A stretch of 59,835 nt of DNA, counting the filler, from Basidiobolus meristosporus CBS 931.73 (taxonomy: Eukaryota > Fungi > Basidiobolomycota): the NCBI GenBank assembly GCA_002104905.1. It is 3 parts of 3 records of this genome, joined end to end, with 100 filler letters (N's around TTAATTAATTAA, not from the genome) between each part and the next. Parts side by side here need not be neighbours in the genome. Positions count along the whole stretch, not along the records: positions 22,594 to 41,125 come from MCFE01001059.1; 2 more parts are not named here. One strand, written 5' to 3'. A program made the position numbers and the translations under genes. Positions within the stretch are counted from its first letter, which is position 1, and each line of letters starts with the position of its first letter. A model generated the notes under the pieces. That model ran no database searches and had not been told where the DNA came from. It saw nothing but the letters and a program-made list of their open reading frames with translations. Shown here piece by piece: positions 22,594 through 41,125 of the stretch.

Positions 22594-24260
22594 TGAGGGA
22601 TGATTTGAATACATTCCTGACTAGATGAGAAGCCATGTTTGATCACTCACTGCCTAGTCGCTAGCACCGGGTATATATGGGTGTCATCCAAGAATAGCCA
22701 AGGTGGTGTTGTATCGCCAGCACTGGGTATACATGGGTGCTAATCGAGAATAGCCAAGAGGATCTAATGATTTGGCTGAATGTTCTCCAATCATTCACAG
22801 TCTGCCTATTGAACGATCCAAGGGTAGTTTCATCTTGTTCAAAGCATTCTGGCTTAACCATCACTCGCTCTATTGCCTTGGTTAGTGGCTTAACCATCAC
22901 TATAATACAGAAGACCTGAATTATTATTAACCAAGTGACCGACTTAATAAATCCTTACTGATTGAGTTAGTTGAATAAAATGTAATGACAGGCAATATAC
23001 TATACCATACTGATTAGGTCGACTGACTCCTATCAAGATAATATTCGCCAACCTGATTTCGGTTTTCCATAGGAAGTTAGTGATTATCGGAGTCGGACGT
23101 CATTACCAGGGATTAGAGTTAGATTCCAAATACGTTCCATTCCCACGTGTAGGGAGGCAAAATCCTTCCTTTCTGTAAAACGTGCCAAGAAAGCGGTATT
23201 CGCAACAATCTTCCAAGTAAATACGCACCTGCGAAGCGGTTCATTACATCTAGTCCAACTGGAGCTTAGTACAGATAGTGCAAAATAGGGCCCCACTACC
23301 TATAGATTTGATAAATTGAGTCTCCAAAACATGCAAAGACAAGTGTATCATCTGAGGATACCGAGATCTCCTACCACCAATCCATCAAACCTGTTACCAG
23401 TGAAGCAGATGAAAGCCAAGACTATCACTGATGTTCGCGAGAATGTTGCAATACAAACCATTGTGATCGTAAAACCCACTCGTATCACTGACAATCAAAA
23501 CCATTCATGCCACGGTCACTGAAAATCCCGCGTGCTCATAGCCTCCTCCATTGTACCGAATTCCATGTCTTATATCATACATTGATGTACCTTACTCTGG
23601 GTATGCTATCCTCCATTCCATGTGATTGCATCATTTGGGTAGAGACTTGATTCAAACCTATGGTCTCTTAAGGGAGGGAAGTCACTAGTTTGATGAAATC
23701 TTTATTCTTACAAAGTAGTTATAAAAAACTTGAGCTAAAATAAAGAAGCATAAGAGTTATTGAATCTCTCAAGTAAATAATCTAACTTAAACTTGTTTTT
23801 TTGGAAACACTGTACTCAATGCATTTAAGTGCCTCTTGGGAGAAGATAATATTCAGGGGCTTTGGGGGAATCACAAACTGTAATGGCACTTGCATATTTA
23901 ATGAATATTGCAACAAGAACCGGGAACCATGGTGTCAAGGAAAGGGGTGTGAACTTGTAAGTAACTATGCCAAAGAACAAGAGGGTGATCAATGATGCAT
24001 GTTTAGGCTTTTCTGCCCTCAATGGCCTTGTAGCTTGCTCAGCTACTGGAGGGGAATTGTCAAAGATATGTCAGCAGGAGGACTTGTGGGAGTGCTTCTG
24101 CTGTAACTAATCTTTGACAAGAGGATTACTGGATTGTATGGTCAATTTTGTAATTACAACTTGATATTCACTTGGTTATACTTTGTTGTTGTAACTGGAC
24201 TTTACTTGACAAAATCTTTTAAAAAATATTTGTAAATCTTGGATTAAATTATGCTATAAC

Positions 24261-27200
24261 TGTTGACAGAGTCTTGGAGATATTGGAAGTGGTTGGGAGA
24301 ACAAGTAGATTATGTGGTTTTCACTTAAGGATTTATTGAATGTGAAAGTAGTATTTATACTTTTACATGGTCTTGGCATAGCAAACATGTAGAGTAGGCT
24401 TAGGAAGGCTCCAAGAGCATGTGAGCAAAGTTTGGGGCTGTTTGGGCAACTTTGAGAATTTTCATGTTCTGGGTATATATTCTAAGTAAATCCTGACAAG
24501 GAATTTGGTCAGTATTCACTAGGATTTTGTAGGTAATGATCTAAGTGACCAAGTTAGGTGAGTATTTAGGTGGGATCACAAATTTTACAACACTCCCACT
24601 CAACTAAATGCTCATACTGACTAGTCCTAATTTTGGCCTAAGATATTTAAATTTGTCTCTAGTTCATGGTTTAGTAAATATGTCTGCAATCATTTCATCT
24701 GTAGGACAGTAAACTAGGCTACCTAAGTTATTCTCTATAGCTTCACATATGAGATGATGTCTAATAATATATGTGCTTAGTTCTGGCATGAAAAGTTGGA
24801 TTTCTACCTAATTGTATACATCCTTGATTATCCTGAAATGAAGTGATAGGCATTTTTTGACAAAAGCCAAAGTCTTGAAAAAGCTTCCTTAACCACATTG
24901 CTTTTTGTGTAGTCTCACAGGCTCCCATATACTCTGCTTCTGTGGTGGAAAGAGCTATTGTTGGTTGCTTTCTTGAATTCCATGAAGCTGCTCCTTTACA
25001 GCAAAGAAAGGTGTATCCTGTGGTGGATCTTCTGTCTTCTAAATTTTGTCCCCAATCAGCATCAGAGTATCCCACAAATCCTGTTCTGAATCTATATAGG
25101 TGTACCTTAAGCAGATATCAGCAGTTCCTTTTAGGTATCTAAAATCTGCTTAACTGCTGCAATATGATCAGATCCATAATTCTGATTATGTTGACTGACA
25201 ACTCCCACTGAATATGAGATATCTGGACATGTTCCAAGCATGATATACTTCAGACTGTCAATCATAGATTGATAAGGAAAATTAGGGCTCTCAGATGGAA
25301 CCAAGCTCTCTTGATTTGGTAGAGTTTAGACCAAGTTAAGGTTTGTCTCCATTGGGGTAGCTGCTGGTTTACAGTCTTCCATTTGGTGCTTCTTTAGTAT
25401 TTCTTGAGTATACTTGGACTGGCTTAGAGTGATAGTCTGGGTACTTCTGTCTAAAGAGAACTTTATCCCTAAGTAAGAACTGAGTTCTCCTAGATTGGAC
25501 ATCTTGAACTCCTTAGATAGGCTGGATTTAGTCTCTTCCAATGTATCAAGGTAATTGGTGGCTATAATAAGATCATCCACATAAAGGGCTAATAGAACTG
25601 GACTTGCTCTATCTGGCTTATGGTATATACTATAGTCAGCATTACTTCTTTCAAAACTTCCAGGCTCCTGGTGATTTTTTGCATCCATTTAGGGATTTTT
25701 TAAGCTTGCAGACCAAATTGGGGTTATCTTGGTCACCAAACCCATTAGCATGGTCCATATACATGCCCTCATCAAGTTCTTCATTCAACAATGCAGCTTT
25801 TACATCCATTTGAAGTAAAAGAAACTTATATTTGGCTGCAATAGCCAATATTAATCTGATGGAATTAAACTTGGCTACCAGTGCAAAGGTCTCAGTATAG
25901 TCAAGTACTTCTGTTTGAGAGTATCCTTTGAACACAAGTATTGCTTTGTGTTTTTCAGCTGTACCTTCAGCCTTGTATTTTGTCTAAAGACCCATCTGCA
26001 TCTAATTAACTTTTGGTTGATTAGTAATACAATTAAGTCCCAAGTTTGATTTTCCATCAGGGCCTGATACTCCTTGGTCATTGCAGATCTCCAAAACTTT
26101 GTCTGAGGGCTACTTAGGGCCTCTTTTACAGTCTGGGGTTCATCAATATGAACTGAATAGGCATAGGCTATGTTTGTACCCTCATTGATGTAGTAATTTG
26201 GGCTATTTCTTGTCTGGTTGGATCTCCTGGCATTTGATACTAGAATGATCACTTCTGGGATATTCCGGGGCACTGATTCAGGCTAAACCACAGTTGTGGA
26301 GTCCTCTAAAGTATAAGATCAGATTTTAGTCATCACTTGATATCATTTTTGTGAAAATTTTGAATTTTCATCAAACAACACATCCCAGGACTTGATCAGC
26401 TTCTTTGCTTTAGTATTGTAAATTCTGTATGCCTTACTCTCATTGCAGTAGCCCAAAAATACCCATTTTACACTTTTTGGCTCAAAATTTGATTGATTTC
26501 TGGACAGTTTCTTGGCAAATGCTGTACACCTAGATTTTCTTAGATGTTCTGCACTTGATCTGTATCCATACCATGCTTCAAATGGAGTAGAATCTCAGAG
26601 TGTTCTGCTGTCACTCCTATTTTTGAGATATACAGCTGCAGCAACCAATTCTGCCCAAAAATCAAATGATAATATTTGATCATGGATCATAGATCTTGCC
26701 ATATCCATTATTGATCTGTTTGAATATTCTGCCACTCCATTTTGCAATGCAGAGTATGCTACAGTAATCTCTTGCTTTATCCCATGAATTTTGCAGAAGT
26801 GGATGAAGAGTTTTGAGGTATATTTTCTTCCATTGCCAGAGCGTACTTTCTTGATTTTTTTGCTAGTTTTGATTAACCCAGAGCTCTTGAACAGTTGTCT
26901 GGCTTGGTTCCCATATATGCAGGCTTCACAGTGCTTCAAATTAGCTGGGGGATCAATTTTTACTCCAGAAATTAGCTGATCTTTGATCATTTTGCACAAA
27001 TAATCAAAATTGAGGTGTCCAAATCTCCTGTGCCAAAGCATTGGTGTTTCTTCATTGAAGTTACTTATGTTGGCTTCCAGATATGTTGGAATATAAGTCA
27101 ACCTGTATAGGCTCTCATCTCTGATACCCAAAGCAATATGAGCACCATTTGAATCAGTGATCCTGCATCCAGAATTGTCAAAGCTGAAACTGAGTGCCTC

Positions 27201-28495
27201 TGCTGTGGCCTTACTTACAGATAGTAGGCTCTTGGTTATTTCTAGTACATAGAGTACTTCTTCAAAGGTAAGTGTGTGGCTTCCTTCACTGCTTCTGAGG
27301 TTTACTTGGATAGTTCCTTCCTGTACACCATCAAGTGTTCTATTGTCACCCATGAAAGCCTTCTTAATTGGAATTTCTTGATATTAGACTTGTTCCATCA
27401 TTCCAGCTGATCATAGTGCCCAATAGTGCCATAGCATGCCAGATGGTGCCTGATCATGCCACAGAGTGCCAGAGGGTGCCATACAGTGCCAATTTGAGAT
27501 CAAAATTGACATGCATATGACCCTAAATTATCAGATTAATTACAGAATATACAGCACTTTCTGGCACTATGATCAATGGCACAATGGAACAAGTCTATTG
27601 GGTAAAAAGTTCTTTTTGGTGTTTAAAGTATTGAGATGCTTCAGAGTCAACATACCACATCTGAGAATCCTTGTTTGTGGTCATATTTGGTGCAGATACA
27701 AACAGTCTATCTTCAGTTGTTGCAGCATTTCCATATTTAGGCTTTTTCTACTGCTTGGCAGCATCTTTGTAGTAAGATATTTTTGTCTCAGATACATTTT
27801 CTTAGTAGCTGAACATGCCTGGTAGGTGTGGTCTAATGCCTTCCAGGTATTCTTTGCCATTTTTGCTCTTGAGCATTGAATAAGCAATTTGTCTTTAACA
27901 TTGAGGTAAATGCAATTAAACGCACTTTATTCTTTCTTTGGGTACTTTAAGGCTTCCTCTCCCATGTATTTAGGAGGGCATTCTTCTCCATTGACAATAT
28001 CCCAAAGGTCTCTTTCCCGTAGCAGCATCTTTATCTTCACCTTCCACACTTGGTTGTTAAATCCATCCAACTGTTCAGTAGCGGGAGAGCTCCAGTAATA
28101 GCAGTAATTGACATTGCAGAGAGTGACAGCTCAGGGCTCATAACCTGTTGTAAGAGTCTTGGAGATATTGGAAGTGATTGGGAGAACAAGTAGATTATGT
28201 GGTTTTCACTTAATGATTTATTAAATGTAAAAGTTGTATTTATGCTTTTACATGGTCTTGGCATAGCAAACATATAGGATAGACAAAGGAAGGTCACAAG
28301 AGCATGTGTGCAAAGTCTGGGGCTGTTTGGGCAACTTTGGGAATTTTCATGTTCTGGGTACCTGATGTGTTGGTGAAAATATTACAAATAAGCCCCAACA
28401 AGGAATTTAGTTAGTATTCACTAGGATTTTGTAGGTAATGATCTAAGTGACTGAGTTAGGTGAGTATTTAGGTTGAATTACAAACTTTTACTACT
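24261..28495 (-). mobile_element. Degenerate near-full-length Ty1/copia element
   Basis: LTRs 24261-24592 and 28146-~28495; PBS GGTTATGAGCCCT (28145-28133); fragments CEACIYGNQAR (GAG-pre-integrase), [49 protein letters not shown]. Confidence 0.9.
27386..27596. mobile_element. 211-bp MITE of the AGACTTGTTCC family, TSD ATT
   Basis: AGACTTGTTCCAT...ATGGAACAAGTCT; ATT at 27383-27385 and 27597-27599. Confidence 0.9.
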
Positions 28496-31032
28496 GTAAT
28501 TGCTTTGCACTTGAGGACAAATCTTGCATGGGTCCACACAGATCTTAGTAGATTAGACCTGACTTTCTCTTAGTTTTGATTAGCCCCAAGCTCTTGAATG
28601 GTTATCTGGCTTATTTCCCATATATGCAGGTTTCACAGTGCCCCATATTAGCTGGGATATCCATGTATTCAGTAAATTAGTCAATTTTTGATCATTTTGC
28701 TCAAATAACCAAATTGATATGTCCAAGTCTCCTGTGCCAAAGCATTGATGTCTCTTCATTTAAGTTACTTACATTGGCTTCCTCCTATGATGGAATATGA
28801 GTTAGATTGAATAGATTCTCATCTCTTCTACCTGGGGCAATATGGGTGCTATTTTGATCAGTGATCCTGCAAGCAGAGCCATCAAACTGTAACTAAATCC
28901 TTCTGCAGTGGCCTTGTATACTGATTATAGGTTTCTGCCTATTTCTGGTAGATAGAGTACTTTTTTGAAGGTAAGCATGTTGCTTCCTTCATTACTTATA
29001 AGGTTTACTTGGATAGCTGCCTGTTGTATCCAAGAGAAAGTGTAATAAAGCTCTTGAATGGTTTAACTGAACCAAAGGGACAATTAAGTGCAGAATCTTA
29101 GAATTGTCAGAGAGTGGTGGAAATATTAGCAGAAAGATTCTGATCTTATATTGGTCTTGGATATAGCTGGGTTGGCTATAAAGACAATGATATTTGTTTG
29201 CTAGGCAGGCTAGGCTTGGTGTTCTTTGGAGTGCTAGATATACTAGGCTTGGATAGAAACTAGAACTGAATTGTTGGATTCTTATTTTTGCTGAGACAGA
29301 ATCTTAATTTTGCTGAGACACACTAAACCAAAAGGTTCAGTAAACTTTATTTATACTTTTCTGATCAAGTTGAATTAGTAAGCACCAAGGGACTGGATTG
29401 ATTGAAATCAATTCAGGTGTTCATAGGTGCATAAGATAAATGAAAATTACATCATCAACCAACTGATGTCTTGGCAACTGCACAGTGGTTGGATGGATCT
29501 CAGATGACTAATCACCTGGGAAGGCTTGGTAGATAGGTTGATAACGTAATGACCATTTGAAAATAGATCAGGTGTGATAGCTAAAAATAGATTCTGAGGT
29601 GGGATAAAATAAACTGTAACTGGGATTTGTTATGTTTGGGTTAGGAAAAGCAGTTAGGGTACTAGATTTTCAAACGGAGTAAAATTGGCTAAGTTTTAAA
29701 TGCTGATGCACAACACTGCCTATTAAACTGCATCAAGGGTTTTGTTGCTTCCCATAAAAACCTTATTGATTGGTATTTTTTCACATTAGGTAAAAGTTCT
29801 TTTGGTGCATAAGGTGTTGAGATGCTCCAGAAGTAATGTACCACATCCAAGAATTCCTGTTTAGGGTCATATTAGGTGCAGATGCAAATATTTTATCTTT
29901 AGTGGTTGCAGCAATTCTATATTTAAACTTTTTTGCACATTAGCTGTCATTTTATGCACTGCTCTGATGTGAGCCCTTTCCATTTTCAGTAGCTGTAAGA
30001 AAGATTGATGTTGCCTTTAGAGGGTCTTGGCTACCTTATTTGGTGGTTAGCATTGCTCACAAGGCATTTTCTGTTTCCTTTAAATGGGTGCTTCAATTTC
30101 TTAATTCTTCAGCTAGTAGCCTTCCATATATGTGACATAAGCTCAGATCTGCACTACTGAACCCTAAGGCAGATACAAGGCCCTGATGCTTGTCTTTCAG
30201 GCTATACAAGAGAGTAACTATCACATCTTCATAAGTGGTGTGTATACTTGCTGATTCATCTCATCTACTAACAGAGGTATCTGGTTAATTAGATTTTCAT
30301 TTCTTCTCCTAGGAAAATCTGAGTACTAAGAGATTCTGTATAATATACATCTTCTTAACCACTGAAAATGACTGAGAGGTGTCCTCCCAGCATTTTTTAC
30401 CATTTTTGTTCTACAACATTGAATCAGCAAGTTGTCTTTACCATTAATGCAAATGCAATAAAGGAAATTTCTTCTTTCTTCTGGTACTTTAAGATTTCTT
30501 CACCTGTTGCTTGTGGGGGGGGATTATTCTCTCATGACAATATACTAATGGCTTCTTTCCTGCAGCAACATCTTCATCTTCACCTTCTGAACTTTGTAGT
30601 TTAATCAATCCAACTTTTCAATGGAGGGAAAGATTCCAGTACTAACAGTATTAGCCATTGCAGAGAGAGACAGCAAGGGGCTCATTACATGCTGTAGGAG
30701 CTTGGAGATATAGGAAGTGACTGGGAGGAGAAAGTGACAATGCTATTTTCACTTGATTATATACTGAATGTAAGGTAGTATTCATATTGTGGCATAGTTT
30801 TGGCAGAAAAAAAAATAGAATATTTTGAGGAAAGTCACAACAATATGTGTGTCAAGTTTGAGGCTGTTTGGACAACTTTGAAAAATTTATGCTCTGGATA
30901 CTTGATGATTTGGTAAAAGTACTCCAAGTAAATTCCAATAAGGAATTTGATCAGAGTTTTCCAAGATTTGTAGACAAGATCTAGGTGACTAAGCCCAATG
31001 AGTATATAGGTGTAATTACAAAATTCACAACA
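28496..31032 (-). mobile_element. Truncated degenerate copia copy (gag to integrase start) with 5' LTR 30690-31032
   Basis: Colinear with 26800-28495; DLCGPMQ-like integrase start near 28540; decayed PBS just before 30690. Confidence 0.8.
29022..29715. mobile_element. Solo LTR of a further family, 694 bp, 5-bp TSD CTGCC
   Basis: TGTTG...CAACA termini; CTGCC at 29017-29021 and 29716-29720; the flanks rejoin the copia sequence. Confidence 0.85.
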
Positions 31033-31199
31033 GATACAATAGTCTAGAGAAGCAGAAATTAGTAATGAGACAGGATGGGTTGATAATGCACAGAGAGTAA
31101 TCAATATGCCTAGTAGAAAATTCAATGTCTTTGATGCAACCAAAAAATTTAATCAGCTCTACAAAACAGACCAGGATTAAGCCATAACACAATATGACT

Positions 31200-32760
31200 A
31201 CATGGGAGCAGTGTACAGACTGTGAAATACAATAATAGTACCCAATAATTAAGCCTACAGGAACACCTAAAAAAGCATGGATGGGAGACACTTCAACATA
31301 TACTAAAGCCCAAGAACCAGAGGGTGTGAAGACTGAAGATGCTCTTGAGTGTAATGATGATAGGTGGGCTAACATGCAAGACACCATTAGCACTCTAGTG
31401 TACAATCATCCAGAAGCCAGTACACCTTGGCACCCTCATGAACTAAAAGCCTGGCAGGCTGTACATGGTCTGTTCCAGCAGCAACATCCTGTGCTGAAAC
31501 AAGCAAATAGATTTTAGGACATTATCAGTGAGCTCAGATCTATTTAAGCATACTTGAAGCTATGAGAAACACATGAGAAAGAGTACCACAGCAGGAAAGT
31601 AGTAGGTACCTCAAGAACCTATCACACTTAATGCAGAGAGCTCTAAGCAAAAAGCAAGGAAGTGTCAGGCAGTGGGAAGAGTGCTAGCAAGAGAAAAGCA
31701 GCCAGAAATCACAGCTTAGCTGCAATATATCAAGGAGTAAACAGTCTAATACAAGAGTCACAATGCCTGATTAGCAGTGAAGGTCCTGGCAGTAGTAGAG
31801 GCAAAAGCAATTGAAAGAGAGTTCACCAAAAGCAATGACAGAAAAGCATAAGACAAAAGCTGCAATTTGTAGCAGCTAGTGCTGTCAGCCAAGGTCAGTC
31901 TGAGTCTCATAATAGCCAGGAGCAACTACCAACTAGATAATTGCTGTTTTCACAAGTGACCAAAGTGCAGCCAGTGAAAGAGTTCTCCAAAGAGGCTGAT
32001 GGCTTTTAGAGAGAGGCACTTCTTGTCACACATCCTCCACATCCTCCAATGCAGGTGGAGTGAAAATCCCACTGATGAGGAAAGTACCAATGTCAAGATG
32101 TCTAACATTGATCAAAATCAGTGGTGAGATCTTAAAACAGGAGTTTGCATACCAAGAGTTTGCCACACTTCTTCAAGTAGAGTATCAAAGAAAGTGAACT
32201 TATTGCAATGACAGGCAGATAAAGTGCTAGACTTTGCTCTGCTGGCAGAAGACCAGAATATATGGGAACCTGTGAGCTCACAATGGTATAGATCCAAAAG
32301 GTTATCATCAAAGGGATGCATGAAGGATGTTAAGGTGACAACACTTGTTGAATGGTGCATGTTAATGATTATATTTGTAGAGTGTGGTGTTGGGACCATT
32401 GTTAATATATAGTGAAGGGACTTGTATAGGTTAGTGCATACTTGGATTGAGGTGTGTCTGCTATTTAGTGGCACCCACGCATTCAGGCCAGCAGAGTGAT
32501 TTCTCACAGCCACCTGCACCCTCAATATATACTTCGATTACCCCTGGACCTACCACAAATAGCACCCACAGAATGGCAACCAAAAGCGATATTGATTCCA
32601 AGCATGCTACTTCTATACTCAGGGCAGCAAAGCAAATGCCCACAGCCACCGGTGCCACCAACGCATGCTGCTGAGCATTCCTTAAAAAGCCGTAGTTGGA
32701 GGTCCAGAGCTCTGTGCAGAAAGCTGCATGATTTCAGCCATATGCATCCCAATAGATACT
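31200..32760 (+). pseudogene. Possible DIRS-like (tyrosine-recombinase retrotransposon) relic
   Basis: Frameshifted fragments in the expected order: RLMAFRER (~32003), GVKIP, VSAYLD (~32430), and W-Q-P/K-S-D-I (~32575) resembling the WRPRSDI recombinase motif; recognised from memory only. Confidence 0.4.
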
Positions 32761-32964
32761 TGAATTTGAGTATTAGAATTGTTTACTCCATATAGAGGAC
32801 ATTGGCCCAAGAGTTAGGTGGTTTTCCATTTTAACCATTAGTAATATATCTGTGATAGAATAAGAAATTGTGCAACAGGCTTGTGTTTAGGATTCCAATG
32901 CCCCAATTGTCTAGATATACTATGCAATTACTTTGTAGTGTGAAGAAAATTCATACGGCTTCAG

Positions 32965-32970
32965 TTTATT
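32965..32970 (-). terminator. Candidate polyadenylation signal AATAAA
   Basis: About 110 nt downstream of the TGA of the giant gene. Confidence 0.35.
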
Positions 32971-33080
32971 TAATAAAGAATAGGTTTTCGGTCTATTGGC
33001 TATTGAATAGCTGAATTGTCAACCAGGTTGGCAGTCTATTTGTAGGGTACGAACAAACGTTGACTAAACGTTTATGGGAA

Positions 33081-36000
33081 TCATTCCCAGTCACAAATAA
33101 TAGATTGACCAAGAGTTTTGCAAACTGTGTCACTAGCACAATGGTTCTGAATCAGACGTCCATTGACGCAGACGAAAAAGACTGGTGAAGTACCAGATTC
33201 TAGACAACTATATTGGCCATCGGTGCACACCCCACGTTGAGTGGTCTTCACTTGTTTCTCAGCCCGGGTAACAGTGACGGTATGAACGTTGTGTAAAGTA
33301 ACAGTTTGAATAGCCGTAACTGTAACCGGATTGATATCAGTTACAGAAACAGCCAGAGTAGTAGTAGCACATCCAGGAGCACATGTGGTATCGGAGGAAA
33401 CTGGGAGATCTAAGAATAATTATTATGTCAGAGGGCTGTGAGGATTGAGCCTTGTAAAATGTGCTTACCGCTTGTCGTGGCAGATTTGGTAGTAACTCTG
33501 GAAACTGCATGAGCACCTCCTTTTATGGAAATAGTAGGCTGAGCGGTAACGTCACGAGCATTGCCATTAGTTTCGGTAACAGCAACAGAATGAACACCGC
33601 TTCCAGCCGATACAGTAGACTGTGCAGTAGCAGTGCGGTCAATAACAGCGTGAGTCTTGCCGTTAGTGTCGGTAACACTAAAGGTATAAGCACCACTTCC
33701 GACAGAAATAGTAGGTTGGACAGTGACGGTGCGGTCAATAATAGTATGAAGATTGCCGTTGGCCTCTGTTACAGTAACAACGCGCGCACCACTTCCAAAT
33801 GAAGCAGTAGGCTGCACAATGACGGTGTGAATCTCATCATCAATATCAGTGACAGTTACATTGGGAGCACCTGCTTCAGCAGAAGCCGTGGGTTCGATAC
33901 TAATAGTGCGGTCATTGACAGTTTGACCATTACCATCAGTCTCGGTAACGGTAACAGTACAGAGAGCGCTTTCGACTGATACAGTGGGCTGCACAATGAC
34001 AGCGCGAGCCTTGCCATTAGTCTCAGTAATAGTGACGGTGTAGGCTCCAGTTTCCATGGATACGTAGGGTTGATCAGCGATAGTGAGAGTCTTGACATCA
34101 GTCTCAATAACAGTAACAGTAACAGTGCGAGCGCCACATTCGACAGACATAGGCCTGAGAGTCACACTGCGGTCAATCTCAGTAGGTACTATGCCATCAG
34201 CCGCAGTAATAGTAACAGAACTAGTGCCCTTTTCAATAGACATAGTAGGCTGAACAGTAACGGTACGATCAGTGTGAGCCTTGCCAACTGTCTCAGTAAC
34301 AGTAACAGTGCGATCGCCGCTTTCAATTGACATTGTGGGCTCAACAGTGGCATTGCGGTCAACAACCTTTCCATCAATTTCGGTTGTGATTACCGTGCGA
34401 GCACTGCTTTCGACGGAAACAGTAGACTGCACAGTGACAGTGCGGTCAACGACAGTGTGAGCCTTACCATAAGTCCCGGTAATGGAAACGGTGTGAGCAC
34501 CGCTCTCGACAGAAACAGTAGGCTGAACAGTGACAGTGCGGTCAATGACAGTGTGAACCTTGCCATCAGTCTCAGTAATAATAACGGTGCGAGCACCGCT
34601 TTCGACGGAAACAGTGGGCTGAACGGTAATAGTACGGTCAATGACAGTGTGAACCTTGCCATCAGTCTTGGTAATGGCAATGGTGCGAGCACTGCTCTCG
34701 ACAGAAACAGTAGGCTGAACGGTGACAGTGCGGTCAACGACAGTGTGAACCTTGCCATCAATATCGGTAATGTCAATGGTGTGAGCACCACTTTCGACAG
34801 AAACGGTGGGCTGAACAGTGACAGTGTGAACCTTGTCATCAGTCTCAGTAATGGTAATGGTGTGAGCACCACTTTCGACAGAAACAGTGGGCTGAACGAT
34901 GGTAGTGCGGCCAATGACAGTGTGAACATTGCCATCAGTCTCGGTACTTGTAACAATGTGAACACCACTATCGACAGATACAGTAGGATGCACAGTAACA
35001 GTGCGGTCAATGACAGTGTGAATCTTGCTATCAGTCTTGGTAATGGTAATGGTGTGAGCACCACTTTCGACAGAAACAGTGGGCTGAACGGTGGTAGTGC
35101 GGCCAATGACAGTGTGAACATTGCCATCAGTCTCGGTACTTGAAACAATGTGAGCACCACTATCGACAGAAACAGTAGGATGCACAGTAACAGTGCGGTC
35201 AATGACAGTGTGAATCTTGCCATCAGTCTCGGTAATCGTAACAACGTGAGCACCACTTTCGACAGATACAGCGGGCTTAGCAGTGACAGTACGGCCAACG
35301 ACATTGTGAACCTCAGCGACAGTGTGACCCTTTCCATCAGTCTCAGTAATAATAACGGTGCGAGCACCGCTTTCGACGGAAACAGTGGGCTGAACGGTGA
35401 TAGTACGGTCAATGATAGTGTGAACCTTGCCATCAGTCTTGGTAACGGCAACGGTGCGAGCACTGCTCTCGACAGAAACAGAAGGATGCACAGTGACGGT
35501 GCCATCAACGATAGTGTGAACCTTGCCATCAGTCTCGGTAATGGTGACGGTGCGAGCACTGCTCTCAACAGAAACAGTAGGATGCACAGTAACAGTGCCA
35601 TCAATGACAGTGTGAATCTTGCCATCAGTCTCGGTAATCGTAACAACGTGAGCACCACTTTCGACAGATACAGCGGGCTTAGCAGTGACAGTACGGCCAA
35701 CGACATTGTGAACCTCAGCGACAGTGTGACCCTTTCCATCAGTCTCAGTAATAATAACGGTGCGAGCACCGCTTTCGACGGAAACAGTGGGCTGAACGGT
35801 GATAGTACGGTCAATGACAGTGTGAACCTTGCCATCAGTCTTGGTAACGGCAACGGTGCGAGCACTGCTCTCGACAGAAACAGAAGGATGCACAGTGACG
35901 GTGCTATCAACGATAGTGTGAACCTTGCCATCAGTCTCGGTAATGGTGACGGTGCGAGCACTGCTCTCAACAGAAACAGTAGGTTGCACAGTAACAGTGC

Positions 36001-39000
36001 GGTCAATGACAGTGTGAATCTTGCCATCAGTCTCGGTAATCGTAACAATGTGAGTACCACTTTCGACAGAAACAGTAGGCTGAACAGTGACAGTGTGAAC
36101 CTTGCCATCAGTCTCGGTAATGAAAACAGTGTGAGCACCGCTTTCGACAGAAACGGTGGGCTGAACAGTAGCAGTGCGGCCAACGACAGTATGAATCTTG
36201 CCATCAGTCTCAGTAATGGTATTGATGTGAGCACCACTTTCGACAGAAGCAGTGGGCTGAACGGTGGTAGTGCGGCCAATGACAGTGTGAACATTGTCAT
36301 CAGTCTCGGTACTTGTAACAATGTGAACACCACTATCGACAGAAACAGTAGGATGCACAGTAATAGTGCCATCAACAACAGTGTGAATCTTGCCATCAGT
36401 CTCGGTAATCGTAACGGTGCGAGCACTGCTTTCGACAGAAACAGTAGGTTGCACAGTGACAGTGTGAATCTTGCCATCGGTCTCAGTAATCGTAACAATG
36501 TGAGAACCACTTTCGACAGAAACGGTGGGCTGAACAGTGACAGTGCGGTCAATGACAGTGTGAACCTTGCCATCAGTCTCGGTAATGGTAACGGTGCGAG
36601 CACTGTTTTCGACAGCAACTGTAGGATGCACAGTGATAGTGCCATCAACGACAGTGTGAATCTTGCCATCAGTCTCGGTAATCATAGCAACGTGAGCAAC
36701 GCTTTCGACAGAAACAGTGGGCTGAACAGTGACAGTGCGGTCAACGACAGTGTGAATCTTGCCATCAGTCTTGGTAACGGCAACGGTGCGAGCACTGCTC
36801 TCGACAGAAACAGAAGGATGCGCAGTGACGGTGCCATCAACGATAGTGTGAGCCTTGCCATCAGTCTCGGTAATGGTAACGATGCGAGCACTGCTTTCGA
36901 CAGCAACAGTAGGATGCACAGTGATAGTGCCATCAACGACAGTGTGAATCTTGCCATCAGTCTCGGTAACGGCAACGGTGCGAGCACTGCTCTCAACAGA
37001 AACAGAAGGATGCGCAGTGACGGTGCCATCAACGATAGTGTGAATCTTGCCATCAGTCTTGGTAATGGTAACGGTGTGAGTAGTACTTTGGACAGAAACA
37101 GTAGGCTGAACGGTGATAGTTCGGTCAACAATAGTACGGACTGAGCCCCCGTATTCCGTTATAGTCACTGTCGGTTCCACGATTGTTATATCGACTGAAG
37201 TTCTACGTCGGATTGTTACGTTGCTGGACTTTTTTTCGGTATTAGTATTCTTATAGGTTACTGTTGGTTCTGTGATGGTTGCTGTAAGTTCAGTTACAGT
37301 TGTATCAATGGATTTAAGCCGCTGAATGGTCGCCTGCTTTGAGATATCCTTTTTGTCAGAGTGCTTATAGGTTACTGTAGGCTTGGTAATTGTTAAACTG
37401 CTTGAAAACTTGTGTCGGGTGGTCAGCTCGTTCAGTGACCTTTCAGTTACATAGTGCCTATAGGTTACTGTTGGCTTAGGGATAGTTACTGTTAGCTTAG
37501 CAACAGTGGTTTCTACAATTGTTTCATGTTGAATTGTGACTTCTTTTGAAACCCCCTTTGTAACTGAGTAGTTGAAGGTTATCGTAGGTATAGTTACTGT
37601 GAGAGTTGGTTCGGTAACTGTCACGTCGGCTGAAGTATCCGGTTGAATCGTCACTTTTCTAGGAGGTTTTTCGGTTACCGAATGTATGTATGTCAGAGTT
37701 GACTCAGTCACGGTAACATCAATCGACTTACGGTGTCGAATAGTCACCTTCTTGAGTTCTTCGGACGTAATCGAGTGCGTATAAGCTACTGTGGGTTTAG
37801 TTACAGTAACAGTCGGTTCAGTGATTGTTACATCGACTGAAGTCTCGTGTTGAATGGTCACCACGTCAGATGGTCTAACAGTCACGGAATGTTTGTAAGT
37901 TATTGTTGGCTCAGTGATGGTAACTGTTGGTCCGGCAATGGTAACTTCCATTGAAGTATCATGGTGAACTGTTACTTCTTTCGAATCCTCCTTAGTATCG
38001 GATTGCTTATACGTCACAGTAGGTTCAGTAACAGTTACCGTTGGCTCAGTGATTGTTACATCAACTGAAGTCTCGGGTTGAATGGTCACCACGTCAGATG
38101 GTCCAACAGTCACGGAATGTTTGTAAGTTAATGTTGGCTCAGTGATGGTAACTGTTGGTCCGGCAATGGTAACTTCCATTGAAGTATCATGGTGAACTGT
38201 TACTTCTTTCGAATCCTCCTTAGTATCGGATTGCTTATATGTCACAGTAGGTTCAGTAACAGTTACCGTTGGCTCAGTGATTGTTACATCAACTGAATTC
38301 TCGGGTTGGATGGTCACCACGTCGGATGGTTTGACAGTCACGGAATGTTTGTAAGTTATTGTTGGCTCAGTGACTGTAACTGTCGGTCCGGTAATGGTAA
38401 CCTCCATTGAAGTATCACGCCGAATTGTTACTTCCTTCGAAGCCTCTATAGTAACAGAGTGCTTATTGGTGACTACGGGTTCAGTAACCCTGCCTGTTTC
38501 CTTAGAATTAGCACCATGGTGCTCGCTAGTATGAGGTTTCTCGGTCTTGTTAGACGCAGAGCGGTGATGCTCGTTTGAGTGAGGCTTATAACTTTCCTTA
38601 GACTCTGTGCTATGATGCGTGCTTGAATGAGACTTCTCGGTTTCTTTAGACTCACTGTGATGATGCTTGCTAGAGTGAGGCTTCTTCGTCTCCTTAGACG
38701 ATGTGCGGTGATAATGACTTGGGTGAGGCATCTCGGTTTTTTCAGACAAAGCGTGATGGTGTTCACTTGAGCGAGACTTCCCCGTTTCCTTATACTCGGA
38801 GTGATGGGACTCACTAGTATGAGGCTTCTTAGTCTCCTCAGAATCACTGCGACGGCACTCACTTGAGTGAGCCTTTTCAGCCTCCTTCGACTCAGAGCCA
38901 TGATGCTCGCTAGTATTAGGTTTCTCAGCCTTCTTTGACTCAGAGTGATGCTCACTTGAGTGAGGCTTCCCTGTTTCCTTGGAGTCAGTACGATGATGCT

Positions 39001-41125
39001 CAATTGAATGAGGTTTGTAAGTACCCTTTGAGTCAGTGCGATGATTCTTGCTGGAATGAGTCGTCTCAGATTCCTTGGATTTCTTATGACGTTCGTTGCG
39101 GGAATCTGTGCGATGATGCTCGCTGGAGTGAGGCTTCTCAGTCTTTTTGGATCCTGAGCGGTGATGCTCGATGGAATCAGACTTCGAAGTCACCCTAGAG
39201 CCAGCGTGATGATGGCCACTGGAATGAGACTTCTCAGCTTCTTTGGTCTTAGGGTAGTGATGCTCGCTGGGGTGAGGCTTATTAGTTTGCTTGGAGCCAG
39301 TACGATGATGCTCGCGTGAATGAGGCTTATTAGTCTCCTTATACTTGGAGTGGTAATGATCGCTGGAGTGTGCCTTTACGGTTTGCTTAGAGTCAATGCC
39401 ATGATGCTCGCTAGAGTAAAGCTTCTTGGTTTTCTTTGACTCAGGGTGGTGATGTTGGCTAGAATGCGGCTTCTTAGTATCCTTAGAGTCAGTGTAGTGA
39501 TGTACGCTAGAGTGAAGTGTCTCCGCTTTCTTGGACTCAAGGAGGTGAGACTTGCTGGATTGAATCTTCTCGGTTTCCTTGGTGCCAGTGCGACGGTACT
39601 CGCTAGAATGAGGCTTCTGTGTCTCGTTGGTGTCGCTCGGGTGAGGCTTCTCATCCTTCTTGGACTCTAAGTAATGACGTATGCTGGAACGAAGCATCTC
39701 AGATTCTTTGTTATTGGGGTGATACTGCTCACTGGAATAAGGCTGCTCAGTCGTCTTCGATTTATGATGCTGGTTGCTGGAGGTATGCTTTACAGCGCCA
39801 TGGGATCTTTCGTAGTACTTGCTAGAATGAGACTTCTCAGTTGCTGTAGGCTTTTCATGATGTTCCCTAAAAGTAGTCTTCGCAGGATCTTTCGACTTCT
39901 CTTCATAGGTACTGAAGATATGTTTCTGAGTTTCCTTCGACTTTTCAGTCTTCAGTGACTTCTTATGTTGCTTACTGCGTTCTGGCTTCTTTGTTTCCTT
40001 TGATTTCTTATGATCACTGGCTGACGTACTCTTTTCAGAGTCAGGGTAATGGTGATCGCTGGAATGAGGCTTCTTAGTCTCCTTGGTCTCAGGGTGATAA
40101 GGATCGCTTGTGTGAGGCTTTTTAGTTTCCTGGGAGTCAGTGCGCTGAAGCCCGCTTGAATGCGATATATTAGTCTCCTTGGACTCAGGGTGGTGATGTT
40201 GGCTGAAGTTGGGGTTCTCTGTTTCCTTCGACTCTGAGCTATGATGCATGCTGGAGTGAACCTTGACCGCCTTCCGGGATTCAGGGAGCTGAGGTTTGCT
40301 GGGGTGAGATTTCTCGGTTTGCTTAGAGTCGGTGCGATTGGGCACGCTGGAATTAAGCTTCTCTGTGGCTGTAGAAATTTCATCAGGTTCGCTGGAAGTA
40401 TGCTTTACAGGCCCAGTTTCCTGCGACTTCGCATGGTGTGCGCCAGAAATATGTTTCTCAGTTATCGTAGACCTCTTATGAAGCTCGCTGGATGTAGGCT
40501 GTGCAGGCTCTTTTGCCTTCTTATGATGTAAACTGGAAGTATGCTTCTCAGTTGCTATAGGTTTCTCCTGAGGCTCGCTGGAAGTACGTTTCTCAGTGCC
40601 CTGCGACTTCTCATGAAGTACGCTGGAAGTGTGTTTCTCAGTTGCTGCAGACCTTTCCCGAATTTCACTGGAAGTCGGCTTCACAGGTTCCTTTGACTTC
40701 TCATAATGTGTACTGAAAGTATACTTCGCGGTTTCCCGTGACTTCTCATGATATACGCTAGAAATATTTTTCTCAGTTGCTGTAGACTTTTCATGAACTT
40801 CACCGGAAGTAGGCTTCACAGGTTCCTTCAACTTCTCATGGTATGTGCTAGAGGTACGTTTCTCAGTTCCCTGTGACTTGCCATGATATGTATTGAAAGT
40901 ACGCTTGTTGTTTAATGTTGAATTCTCATGATGCTCGCTGGACATAGGCTTCACAGGCTCCTTTGACTTCTCACGATGTGTACTGGAAGTATGCATCTTA
41001 GTTTCCTGCGACTTCTCATGAAGTATGGTGGAAATGTGGTTCTCAGTAGCTGTGGGCTTTTCTTGGACTTCGCTTGTAGTAGGATTCACAGGTTCCTTTG
41101 ACTTCTCATGATGTGTGCTGAAGGT
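33081..41125 (-). CDS. Giant repetitive, probably cell-surface, protein (at least ~2660 aa, 5'-partial): His-rich repeats, Thr/Val repeats and a C-terminal CBM19-like chitin-binding module; exons 41125-33469 and 33409-33081
   Basis: The frame is open from the gap (TFSTHHEKSKEPV...; the track's 'M' at 41089 is GTG). Splicing the 59-bp intron gives an in-frame final exon DLPVSSDTTCAPGC...GVCTDGQYSCLESGTSPVFFVCVNGRLIQNHCASDTVCKTLGQSIICDWE*, with TGA at 33083-33081. Confidence 0.9.
33084..33227 (-). other. CBM19-like (PF03427) six-cysteine module coding segment
   Basis: C-x2-G-x3-C-x8-F-x-C-x2-G-x6-C-x5-C-x8-C-D-W pattern at the extreme C-terminus, resembling the chitin-binding tail of fungal chitinases such as yeast Cts1. 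Confidence 0.8.
33410..33468 (-). other. 59-bp spliceosomal intron, phase 1
   Basis: GTAAGC donor, CTGAC branch point, TTCTTAG acceptor; removal joins two open frames and ends in a six-cysteine domain. Confidence 0.88.
33500..37155 (-). repeat. Coding tandem repeat, ~96-bp/32-aa units (TVTVQPTVSVESGAHTVTITETDGKVHTVIDR), with a 402-bp higher-order duplication
   Basis: Roughly 35-40 units; the same string recurs at 35241 and 35643 (offset 402 bp = 134 aa). Confidence 0.92.
37155..38490 (-). repeat. Coding tandem repeat, 114-bp/38-aa units (VTEPTVTYKHSVT...), with a 228-bp dimer duplication
   Basis: The same string recurs at 37981 and 38209 (offset 228 bp = 76 aa). Confidence 0.88.
38490..41125 (-). 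repeat. Coding tandem repeat, 48-bp/16-aa His/Ser/Lys/Glu-rich units (KPHSSEHHHSESKETE), grading into EKxTSSxxHEKS units toward the gap
   Basis: Consecutive 16-aa units, e.g. KPHSSKHHHSESKETE KSHSSTHHSTESKESY KPHSNEHHRSASNKTE KPHTSEHHGANSKETG. Confidence 0.88.

Follow-up and report, generated by a model that had tools for sequence, protein, structure and literature searches.

A large tandem-repeat protein of Basidiobolus meristosporus with a CBM19-like C-terminal module, a putative chitin-held surface fibre

The window analysed here, that is, the whole stretch of 59,835 nucleotides (filler included) from Basidiobolus meristosporus CBS 931.73 (GenBank assembly GCA_002104905.1), contains in the piece coming from record MCFE01001059.1 (positions 22,594 to 41,125) a very long minus-strand open reading frame (ORF), at 33081-41125, which encodes four zones of tandem repeats and ends in a six-Cys module. 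The locus raises the question of whether it is a gene at all and, if so, what a protein of this design could be for. Our reading is that the encoded product, hereafter the window protein, would belong to an uncharacterised Basidiobolus family and be secreted as a fibre of the surface or matrix, held on chitin, most likely that of the fungus's own wall, by a chitin-binding-type module at its C-terminus. We give this reading a probability of about 0.55. An earlier note on this DNA had been made by reading the sequence without database searches, and its claims are considered along with the results that bear on them.

Gene structure and coding status

Both the ORF listing and the translation gave a minus-strand frame uninterrupted from 41125, the edge of the piece, to 33428. 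A GT-AG intron of 59 nt, in phase 1, is predicted from sequence signals at 33410..33468 (minus strand), and exon 1 ends at 33469. The donor (GTAAGC, at 33468) is placed 14 codons ahead of the stop of the unspliced frame, a CTGAC branch-like motif is found about 20 nt ahead of the TTCTTAG acceptor ending at 33410, and the G+C content of the intron is 37% versus 48% in the adjoining exon. The intron sequence is present in genomic contigs of the sequencing runs X1 and X2. Its removal fuses the long frame to an exon 2 of 108 codons (33409-33084), followed by a TGA stop codon (33081..33083, minus strand) that coincides with the start coordinate given in the earlier note. The spliced product has 2,661 codons without any stop, in agreement with the at least ~2660 aa anticipated there. 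The loss of the N-terminus at the gap, also claimed in the note, was borne out: the frame runs off the piece edge, the true N-terminus lies beyond 41125 and the gene is known from a 5'-truncated form.

The remaining five frames over the same DNA have between 50 and 284 stops each. All the repeat periods obtained with Tandem Repeats Finder are divisible by 3 (45, 48, 81, 96, 114, 135, 228, 402 and others), and the length variants of the repeat units stay in frame. When 23 of the 32-aa units described below were aligned, the differences at codon positions 1, 2 and 3 were 1352, 898 and 1901, respectively, and single-change codons comprised 1191 synonymous versus 1772 non-synonymous cases, a synonymous share far above the neutral level. 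The G+C content of the locus is 46-50%, compared to 36-42% in the flanks. Because of the third-position bias and the synonymous excess among the 32-aa units, the gene is coding-like and does not behave as a neutral satellite. Judged from these sequence characters, the locus is a real protein-coding gene that was truncated at its 5' end by the assembly.

Two ORFs in other frames were also observed, one of 759 aa at 34390-36669 (minus strand) and another of 664 aa at 35150-37144 (plus strand). Both are restricted to the array of 96-nt repeats, and the simplest explanation is that they are by-products of a stop-free repeat unit and not overlapping genes. Neither tRNAs nor Rfam families were found in the piece.

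The C-terminal six-Cys module

The last 51 residues of the window protein (aa 2611-2661; 33084..33236, minus strand) constitute a six-Cys module that was studied by Pfam, phmmer, hhalign and AlphaFold2. Its Cys spacing is C-x6-C-x11-C-x9-C-x5-C-x8-C and it ends in C-D-W-E, Trp2660 being the penultimate residue. The C-terminus of the protein (...SIICDWE, stop) is therefore that of a polar Cys module and has no hydrophobic tail for glycosylphosphatidylinositol (GPI) attachment, as the earlier note had pointed out.

The same note had identified the module as a CBM19. A search with PF03427, which it had proposed as a check, gave a score short of the threshold, since the module reached 13.1-13.3 bits (E ~0.09) with Pfam CBM_19 and the gathering cut-off of this family is 20.1. 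The score with CBM_14 (PF01607) was 15.3-17.1 bits, also under the gathering cut-off (22.1). In the closest relative, KAK9670731 (P0001), CBM_19 gave 19.7 bits, and when 34 modules of the family were scanned singly (E <= 0.01), CBM_14 was found in 21 of them (best 1e-4) and CBM_19 in 19 (best 7e-6). Exon 2 was associated in the ESM Atlas with a 'CBM19 domain-containing' cluster at a score of 0.76 (< 0.8). Matches of the module to EGF_Tenascin and Dickkopf_N were rejected as weak Cys-rich noise.

Alignment of the 34 modules showed five invariant Cys and a sixth one present in more than 90% of them, with the consensus C-x2-G-x-Y-x-C-x3-G-x-SP-x-F-x2-C-x-N-G-x6-C-A-x-G-T-V-C-K-T-x-G-x-S-I-x-C-D-W-P. 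A profile of 13 Basidiobolus-type modules was then compared by hhalign with two GH18-chitinase modules, namely those of Massospora cicadina KAI0243473 (P0005), which contains a GH18 domain plus a Pfam CBM_19 at 30.4 bits, and of P0037, a 'chitinase' according to its source. The alignment covered 51 columns with all six Cys in register (probability 99%, E 2.5e-18). The module thus appears clearly homologous to those on Zoopagomycota GH18 chitinases, the GH18-linked modules being more distant from the window module (34-39% identity).

The family profile was also compared with the PDB. The top three matches were all CBM14 domains (squid chitin-binding beak protein 3, human chitotriosidase CBM14 and an insect chitinase; E 0.03-0.06), and the core common to the profile and to these CBM14 chains was C-x-N-G...C-x-x-G-T-V...C-D-W-P. 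AlphaFold2 run with the family alignment predicted a module of five strands with a predicted local distance difference test (pLDDT) score of 81. Foldseek with this model retrieved first the CBM14 of CHIT1 (5hbf, 6so0) and then Der p 23, tachycitin and Avr4 (E >= 0.14), and an exhaustive VIA search found EHEP, Der p 23, Avr4, Blo t 12, CHIT1 and tachycitin at Z 2.8-5.4, with CBM14-type folds making up most of the top rows. The module may adopt a distorted beta-sandwich of the kind seen in CHIT1 and tachycitin.

The spacing of the module (6, 11, 9, 5, 8) departs from the canonical six-Cys consensus of peritrophin-A. Its fifth Cys occupies the position of the CBM14 Phe (GTVC versus GTVF), and the last CBM14 Cys is lacking, the module ending at C-D-W. 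The label 'CBM14/19-clan, CBM19-like' was adopted because both Pfam cut-offs are missed and the nearest solved structures are CBM14. We regard the module as a member of the CBM14/19 clan whose nearest kin are the CBM19-type chitinase tails and whose Cys pattern is not canonical peritrophin-A. The CBM19 identification consequently stands as far as homology to chitinase modules that Pfam calls CBM_19 is concerned, but not as a strict family assignment. The human enzyme CHIT1 ends in C463-T-W465-N466, in which Trp465 is conserved and surface-exposed, and deletion of W465-N466 abolishes chitin binding (PMC4844120). The terminal C-D-W-E of the window module matches these CHIT1 residues, and the Trp is invariant in 13 of the 13 Basidiobolus-type modules.

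Relatives of the window protein

An exhaustive phmmer search with the module against 1.84 billion representatives yielded 57 matches at E <= 0.001. The best ones were hypothetical proteins of B. ranarum (GCA_040143965; E 4e-17 to 1e-10, 50-69% identity), among them KAK9670731 (58% identity, E 4e-17) and P0002 (69%). Weaker matches came from B. meristosporus CBS 931.73, Massospora, Dimargaris, Bifiguratus and Geosiphon. The true relatives have a single copy of the module at the extreme C-terminus, and in 24 of 32 it ends at most 8 residues from the end of the protein. Many other matches, made of multiple weak stretches (query residues 17-36), were discarded as spurious, and P0003, the only one of them that was run against Pfam, proved to be an ankyrin/STAND protein. 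The UniRef name of the relatives is 'Chitin-binding type-2 domain-containing protein', one of them being named 'Zonadhesin'.

At least 10 relatives of the window protein were found in B. ranarum. Like it, KAK9670731, KAK9679752, KAK9759516, KAK9679742 and others have a C-terminal module ending in C-D-W, whose identity to that of the window protein is 50-69%, but 34% in KAK9679742. Most of them also share the upstream Cys with a TVTVT-type linker, and ahead of the module they have Thr/Val- and/or His-rich tandem repeats. In KAK9679742 (P0056, 1,082 aa) the zones follow the same order as in the window protein, from His-rich repeats to Thr/Val repeats and then the module. The relatives differ in their size, 63-1,082 aa in databases, largely because contigs end inside the repeats; in that no counterpart of the window protein's 16-aa and 32-aa units was detected in them; and in that those checked have no intron before the module. 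The earlier note had seen in this architecture no characterised family and had suggested looking for it in other fungi. The family is indeed uncharacterised, as our literature searches found no published study of it or of a Basidiobolus adhesive, but the architecture is not unique, given the B. ranarum relatives and the identical zone order of KAK9679742.

Exon 2 begins with a Thr/Val-rich linker (aa 2553-2610; 33237..33409, minus strand), identified by translation and family alignment, which carries a Cys pair, C-A-P-G-C (CxxxC). An upstream Cys followed by a TVTVT-type stretch precedes the module in 12 of 13 Basidiobolus-type sequences. This Cys, present twice in the window protein, is located 35-50 residues before the module, in most cases with a Pro after it. 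The upstream Cys, which would be an odd seventh in most relatives, is a candidate for an intermolecular disulfide cross-link.

A hydrophobic, signal-peptide-like start was observed in about 15 of the 32 relatives, most of the others being fragments, and the family members with intact N-termini look secreted. Those members have repeats or a small Cys-rich domain ahead of the module, and no GH18 match was obtained in any of the five Basidiobolus relatives scanned with Pfam. The small Cys-rich domain, placed between the signal peptide and the Thr-rich region, is conserved in P0012, P0018, P0020 and P0014 of B. ranarum; it is duplicated in P0018 and had no Pfam match in P0012, the one scanned.

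Four close relatives lie on B. ranarum contigs of 2-3.4 kb (L001:1-3316, L002:1-1509, L003:1-991 and L004:1-1330, in GCA_040143965). In all four, the repeat ORF continues without a stop up to the start of the contig, and they are therefore regarded as fragments of longer repeat genes. In the models of L003 and L004, a first exon of 7-8 codons and the intron after it look like artefacts of annotation supplying a Met; the annotated introns of the relatives are 5' artefacts and none is at the module. A giant size may therefore be the rule for the Basidiobolus module family. The window protein has the module at the extreme C-terminus, the Thr/Val linker with the upstream Cys and the tandem repeats before it, as the family does. 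It would be the longest fragment known so far from this family of secreted repeat proteins, which is uncharacterised, has expanded in Basidiobolus and bears a tail of chitin-binding type.

Organization of the repeat zones

The four repeat zones and the terminal module that the earlier note described were all found, in the order given and at placed positions on the minus strand. Zone 1 (aa 1-270; 40316..41125), recognised by its 135-nt period and translation, consists of six 45-aa units, each built from three sub-units of 15 aa, in which K, E, S, T and H abound. Zone 2 (aa 271-880; 38486..40315) has a 48-nt period and about 35-38 units of 16 aa, of the KPHSSEHHRTDSKETK type; it contains 14.6% His, 15% Lys and 19% Ser, with units of KPHSSEHH type. 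Zone 3 (aa 881-1323; 37157..38485) is formed by about 12 Thr/Val-rich units of 38 aa (31+7) with a period of 228 nt (2 x 114), and zone 4 (aa 1324-2552; 33469..37156), delimited by repeat analysis, by about 38 Thr/Val-rich units of 32 aa (ITETDGK.HTV.DRTVTVQPTVSVESGA.TVT). The zone 4 array holds in-frame variants of 27 and 38 aa, and the 32-aa units closest to the C-terminal module are degenerate. Higher-order repeats of 402 nt (zone 4) and 228 nt, with 90 and 93% identity, respectively, reflect recent unequal exchange.

Zone 3 is the sole repeat zone for which a homologue was detected, its units having 36-41% identity to the 38-aa repeats of KAK9670731. The Pfam scan of exon 1 gave only noise, and the ESM Atlas search with the repeats retrieved only unrelated bacterial clusters with scores < 0.8. 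In the Thr/Val units, beta-branched and polar residues alternate. AlphaFold2 modelling of six 32-aa units, for which the alignment was made of other windows of the array, predicted an all-beta structure with four strands per unit, and Foldseek with this model found only beta-solenoid proteins, at template modelling (TM) scores < 0.2. These models give a hint that the Thr/Val stalk may be beta-rich, short of any fold assignment.

Comparison with known systems

A related design is found in the CBM19-type tails of GH18 chitinases. In the yeast Cts1 layout a GH18 domain is followed by a Ser/Thr linker and a CBM19; as in KAI0243473, a six-Cys module homologous to that of the window protein comes after a Ser/Thr-rich region, and the expected shared role is to hold a secreted protein on chitin. 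Unlike these enzymes, the window gene has no visible catalytic domain, its repeat region is tens of times longer and its module falls under the CBM_19 cut-off. The CBM14/peritrophin-A domains (CHIT1 chitin-binding domain, tachycitin, Der p 23, Avr4) come first in the searches with the predicted beta-rich disulfide fold of the module, and the core motif and the terminal Trp are common to them and to it. The module differs from them in its Cys spacing, its score under the Pfam cut-off, its fungal origin and its single copy. Mucin-like Thr-rich repeats are combined with a chitin-binding module in the peritrophins and insect intestinal mucins.

The GPI-anchored adhesins Als, Flo and Epa act as cell-surface fibres and contain very extended arrays of Thr-rich repeats, in which beta-branched residues alternate. 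The window gene resembles them in its long Thr-rich repeats and in their recent change of number, but its product lacks a C-terminal GPI signal and shows no sequence homology with them, and its anchoring would be non-covalent, through a carbohydrate-binding module. Finally, chitin-binding proteins occur together with His-rich beak proteins in the chitin-based material of the squid beak, and the squid protein DgCBP (chitin binding beak protein 3, PDB 7bwe) is the top, weak PDB match of the family profile (E 0.026). In the beak, chitin binding and His-rich sequence reside on separate proteins, and the likeness to the window protein is one of analogy only.

Proposed function and alternative explanations

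After secretion, the C-terminal, disulfide-knotted module would attach without a covalent bond to chitin, most probably that of the wall or spore wall of the fungus itself, by means of exposed aromatic residues that would include the penultimate Trp matching Trp465 of CHIT1. The Thr/Val region of about 1,700 residues may be O-glycosylated and/or beta-rich, acting as a long spacer or a self-associating stalk. The His/Lys/Glu/Ser region of about 880 residues would be distal and could give rise to pH- or metal-dependent adhesion, cohesion or metal binding. The overall role would resemble that of a fungal adhesin or a mucin-like fibre, with a carbohydrate-binding module taking the place of the GPI remnant as its anchor. 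The interpretation in the earlier note was supported in part: the gene, its zones and its terminal module are as described there, whereas the tethering to wall chitin and the role as an adhesin, spore-coat or glue fibre are plausible proposals.

Several results weigh against this proposal. The module misses both the CBM_14 and the CBM_19 cut-offs. Its matches to solved structures have low absolute scores (Foldseek E >= 0.14, VIA Z <= 5.4), as expected for about 50 residues, although they are consistent. The modelling of the 32-aa repeats is of low confidence, since a single model of the five reached a pLDDT of 66 and the other four gave 30-42. Within the length ranges searched of a 5.8-billion-protein index, no homologues were detected for region 1-2552, for the Thr/Val zone (283 aa) or for the His zone (330 aa). 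The sequencing runs containing the locus (X1 and X2, of one sample) are all genomic, with no RNA run among them, and the intron is a prediction that has no equivalent at that place in the four B. ranarum relatives checked. The N-terminus, which may carry a signal peptide or a catalytic domain, is missing. Chitin binding, localisation, glycosylation and metal binding are all properties that we infer from the sequence.

That missing N-terminus leaves room for a GH18 chitinase of the usual kind, or some other enzyme, whose catalytic domain lies beyond the piece edge and is joined to the chitin-binding tail by a repeat linker of extraordinary length. The homologous modules of KAI0243473 and P0037 are C-terminal on GH18 chitinases. 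However, the closest relatives are non-catalytic, and an N-terminal GH18 is unlikely because the five scanned Basidiobolus relatives lack this domain and the intact ones have signal-peptide-like starts, followed by repeats or the small Cys-rich domain and then the module. Moreover, the GH18-linked modules are the more distant ones, and we know of no chitinase with a linker of 2,600 residues. This is for us the least probable of the explanations considered. We also judge it very improbable that the locus is a decaying or silent repeat array, with its frame kept by recent amplification, or a misassembled one, from which no such protein is made. The absence of RNA support, the ORFs of 660-760 aa in other frames of the 96-nt array, the decayed retrotransposons adjoining the gene and an intron not common to the relatives would all fit with it, and recent higher-order duplications of 90-93% identity can carry an open frame along. 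On the other hand, the frame is open across four unrelated repeat types and also across degenerate, old units, all the indels are in frame, and there is an excess of third-position and synonymous changes. In the module, all six Cys are conserved, as are the residues that hardly vary across the family, and the canonical intron signals are such that splicing restores the exact frame of the module.

If the module does bind chitin, the target could be foreign, the protein being a secreted glue or adhesin that attaches spores (e.g., capilliconidia) or hyphae to the cuticle of arthropods or to chitin-containing material in the gut. The module and the evidence of secretion are the same in both cases, Basidiobolus makes adhesive capilliconidia, and the repeats rich in His call to mind certain animal proteins of similar composition that serve in adhesion or cohesion. 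The ecology of the genus, with insect-borne adhesive conidia and chitin-rich diets, also agrees with this explanation (PMC9391592; PMC8042737). Nevertheless, nothing visible would hold such a fibre to the fungus, save the missing N-terminus or the upstream Cys, and we regard a foreign target as unlikely. Alternatively, the module could coat the fungus's own chitin while the glycosylated repeats shield it from the chitinases of hosts or competitors or from immune recognition, in the manner of Avr4. This protein is among the fold matches of the module and is a CBM14 effector binding fungal chitin (PMC6128652), and Basidiobolus passes through animal guts (PMC9391592). Shielding would, however, need many chitin sites per mass, against a single 51-aa module per more than 2,660 residues, and it leaves the His-rich zone without explanation, for which we find it improbable.

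The reading of a surface or matrix fibre held on the fungus's own chitin also admits a bolder version, which we regard as quite unlikely. The protein would then form a possibly micrometre-long fibril of a new class of fungal surface proteins, with a CBM19-like non-covalent chitin anchor instead of GPI or Pir attachment, a beta-solenoid or amyloid-like Thr/Val shaft and a distal, His-rich glue switchable by pH or metals, for instance as the adhesive of capilliconidia or a cement of the spore wall. In such a case, the family would have been systematically hidden because its repeats break genome assemblies.

Genomic surroundings and sequence variants

A decayed Ty1/copia-type long terminal repeat retrotransposon is located at 24260-28488 on the minus strand. 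Its direct repeats (24260-24586 and 28145-28488, 86-91% identity) flank broken pol ORFs, in which the matches to gag-pre-integrase, Pol_BBD and RVT_2 are split by frameshifts and stops. The region 28564-29028 is 76-82% identical to 26857-27325, in the gag/pre-integrase region of this element, and 30516-30700 is 77-80% identical to its positions 27973-28156. Both are further fragments of this element family and suggest nested or tandem retroelement debris ahead of the gene in window coordinates.

Two runs of one sample differ by T/C at 32666, by a 5-nt insertion after 32760 and by C/T at 33781 (Val2449Ile), and the contigs of one run break exactly at the substitution sites 32666 and 33781. These differences point to two haplotypes or nuclei in the sequenced culture.

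Significance

At present the locus stands more as an annotated curiosity than as a discovery. What appears new is a very large member of a known design, mucin- or adhesin-like repeats plus a chitin-binding module, within a family that is uncharacterised and has expanded in Basidiobolus. This lineage diverged early among the fungi, has received little study and counts opportunistic pathogens of animals among its members. The genes of the module family are systematically fragmented and mis-modelled in the current Basidiobolus assemblies, with ORFs running off contig ends and artificial 5' mini-exons, and because of this both the size of the family and the length of its genes are underestimated. 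The His-rich array beside a chitin-binding module constitutes a concrete candidate for metal- or pH-dependent adhesion. To our knowledge, the known surface fibres and adhesins of fungi are attached covalently, via GPI remnants or Pir links; if our reading is true, giant repeat proteins held by a terminal module would represent a different attachment logic.

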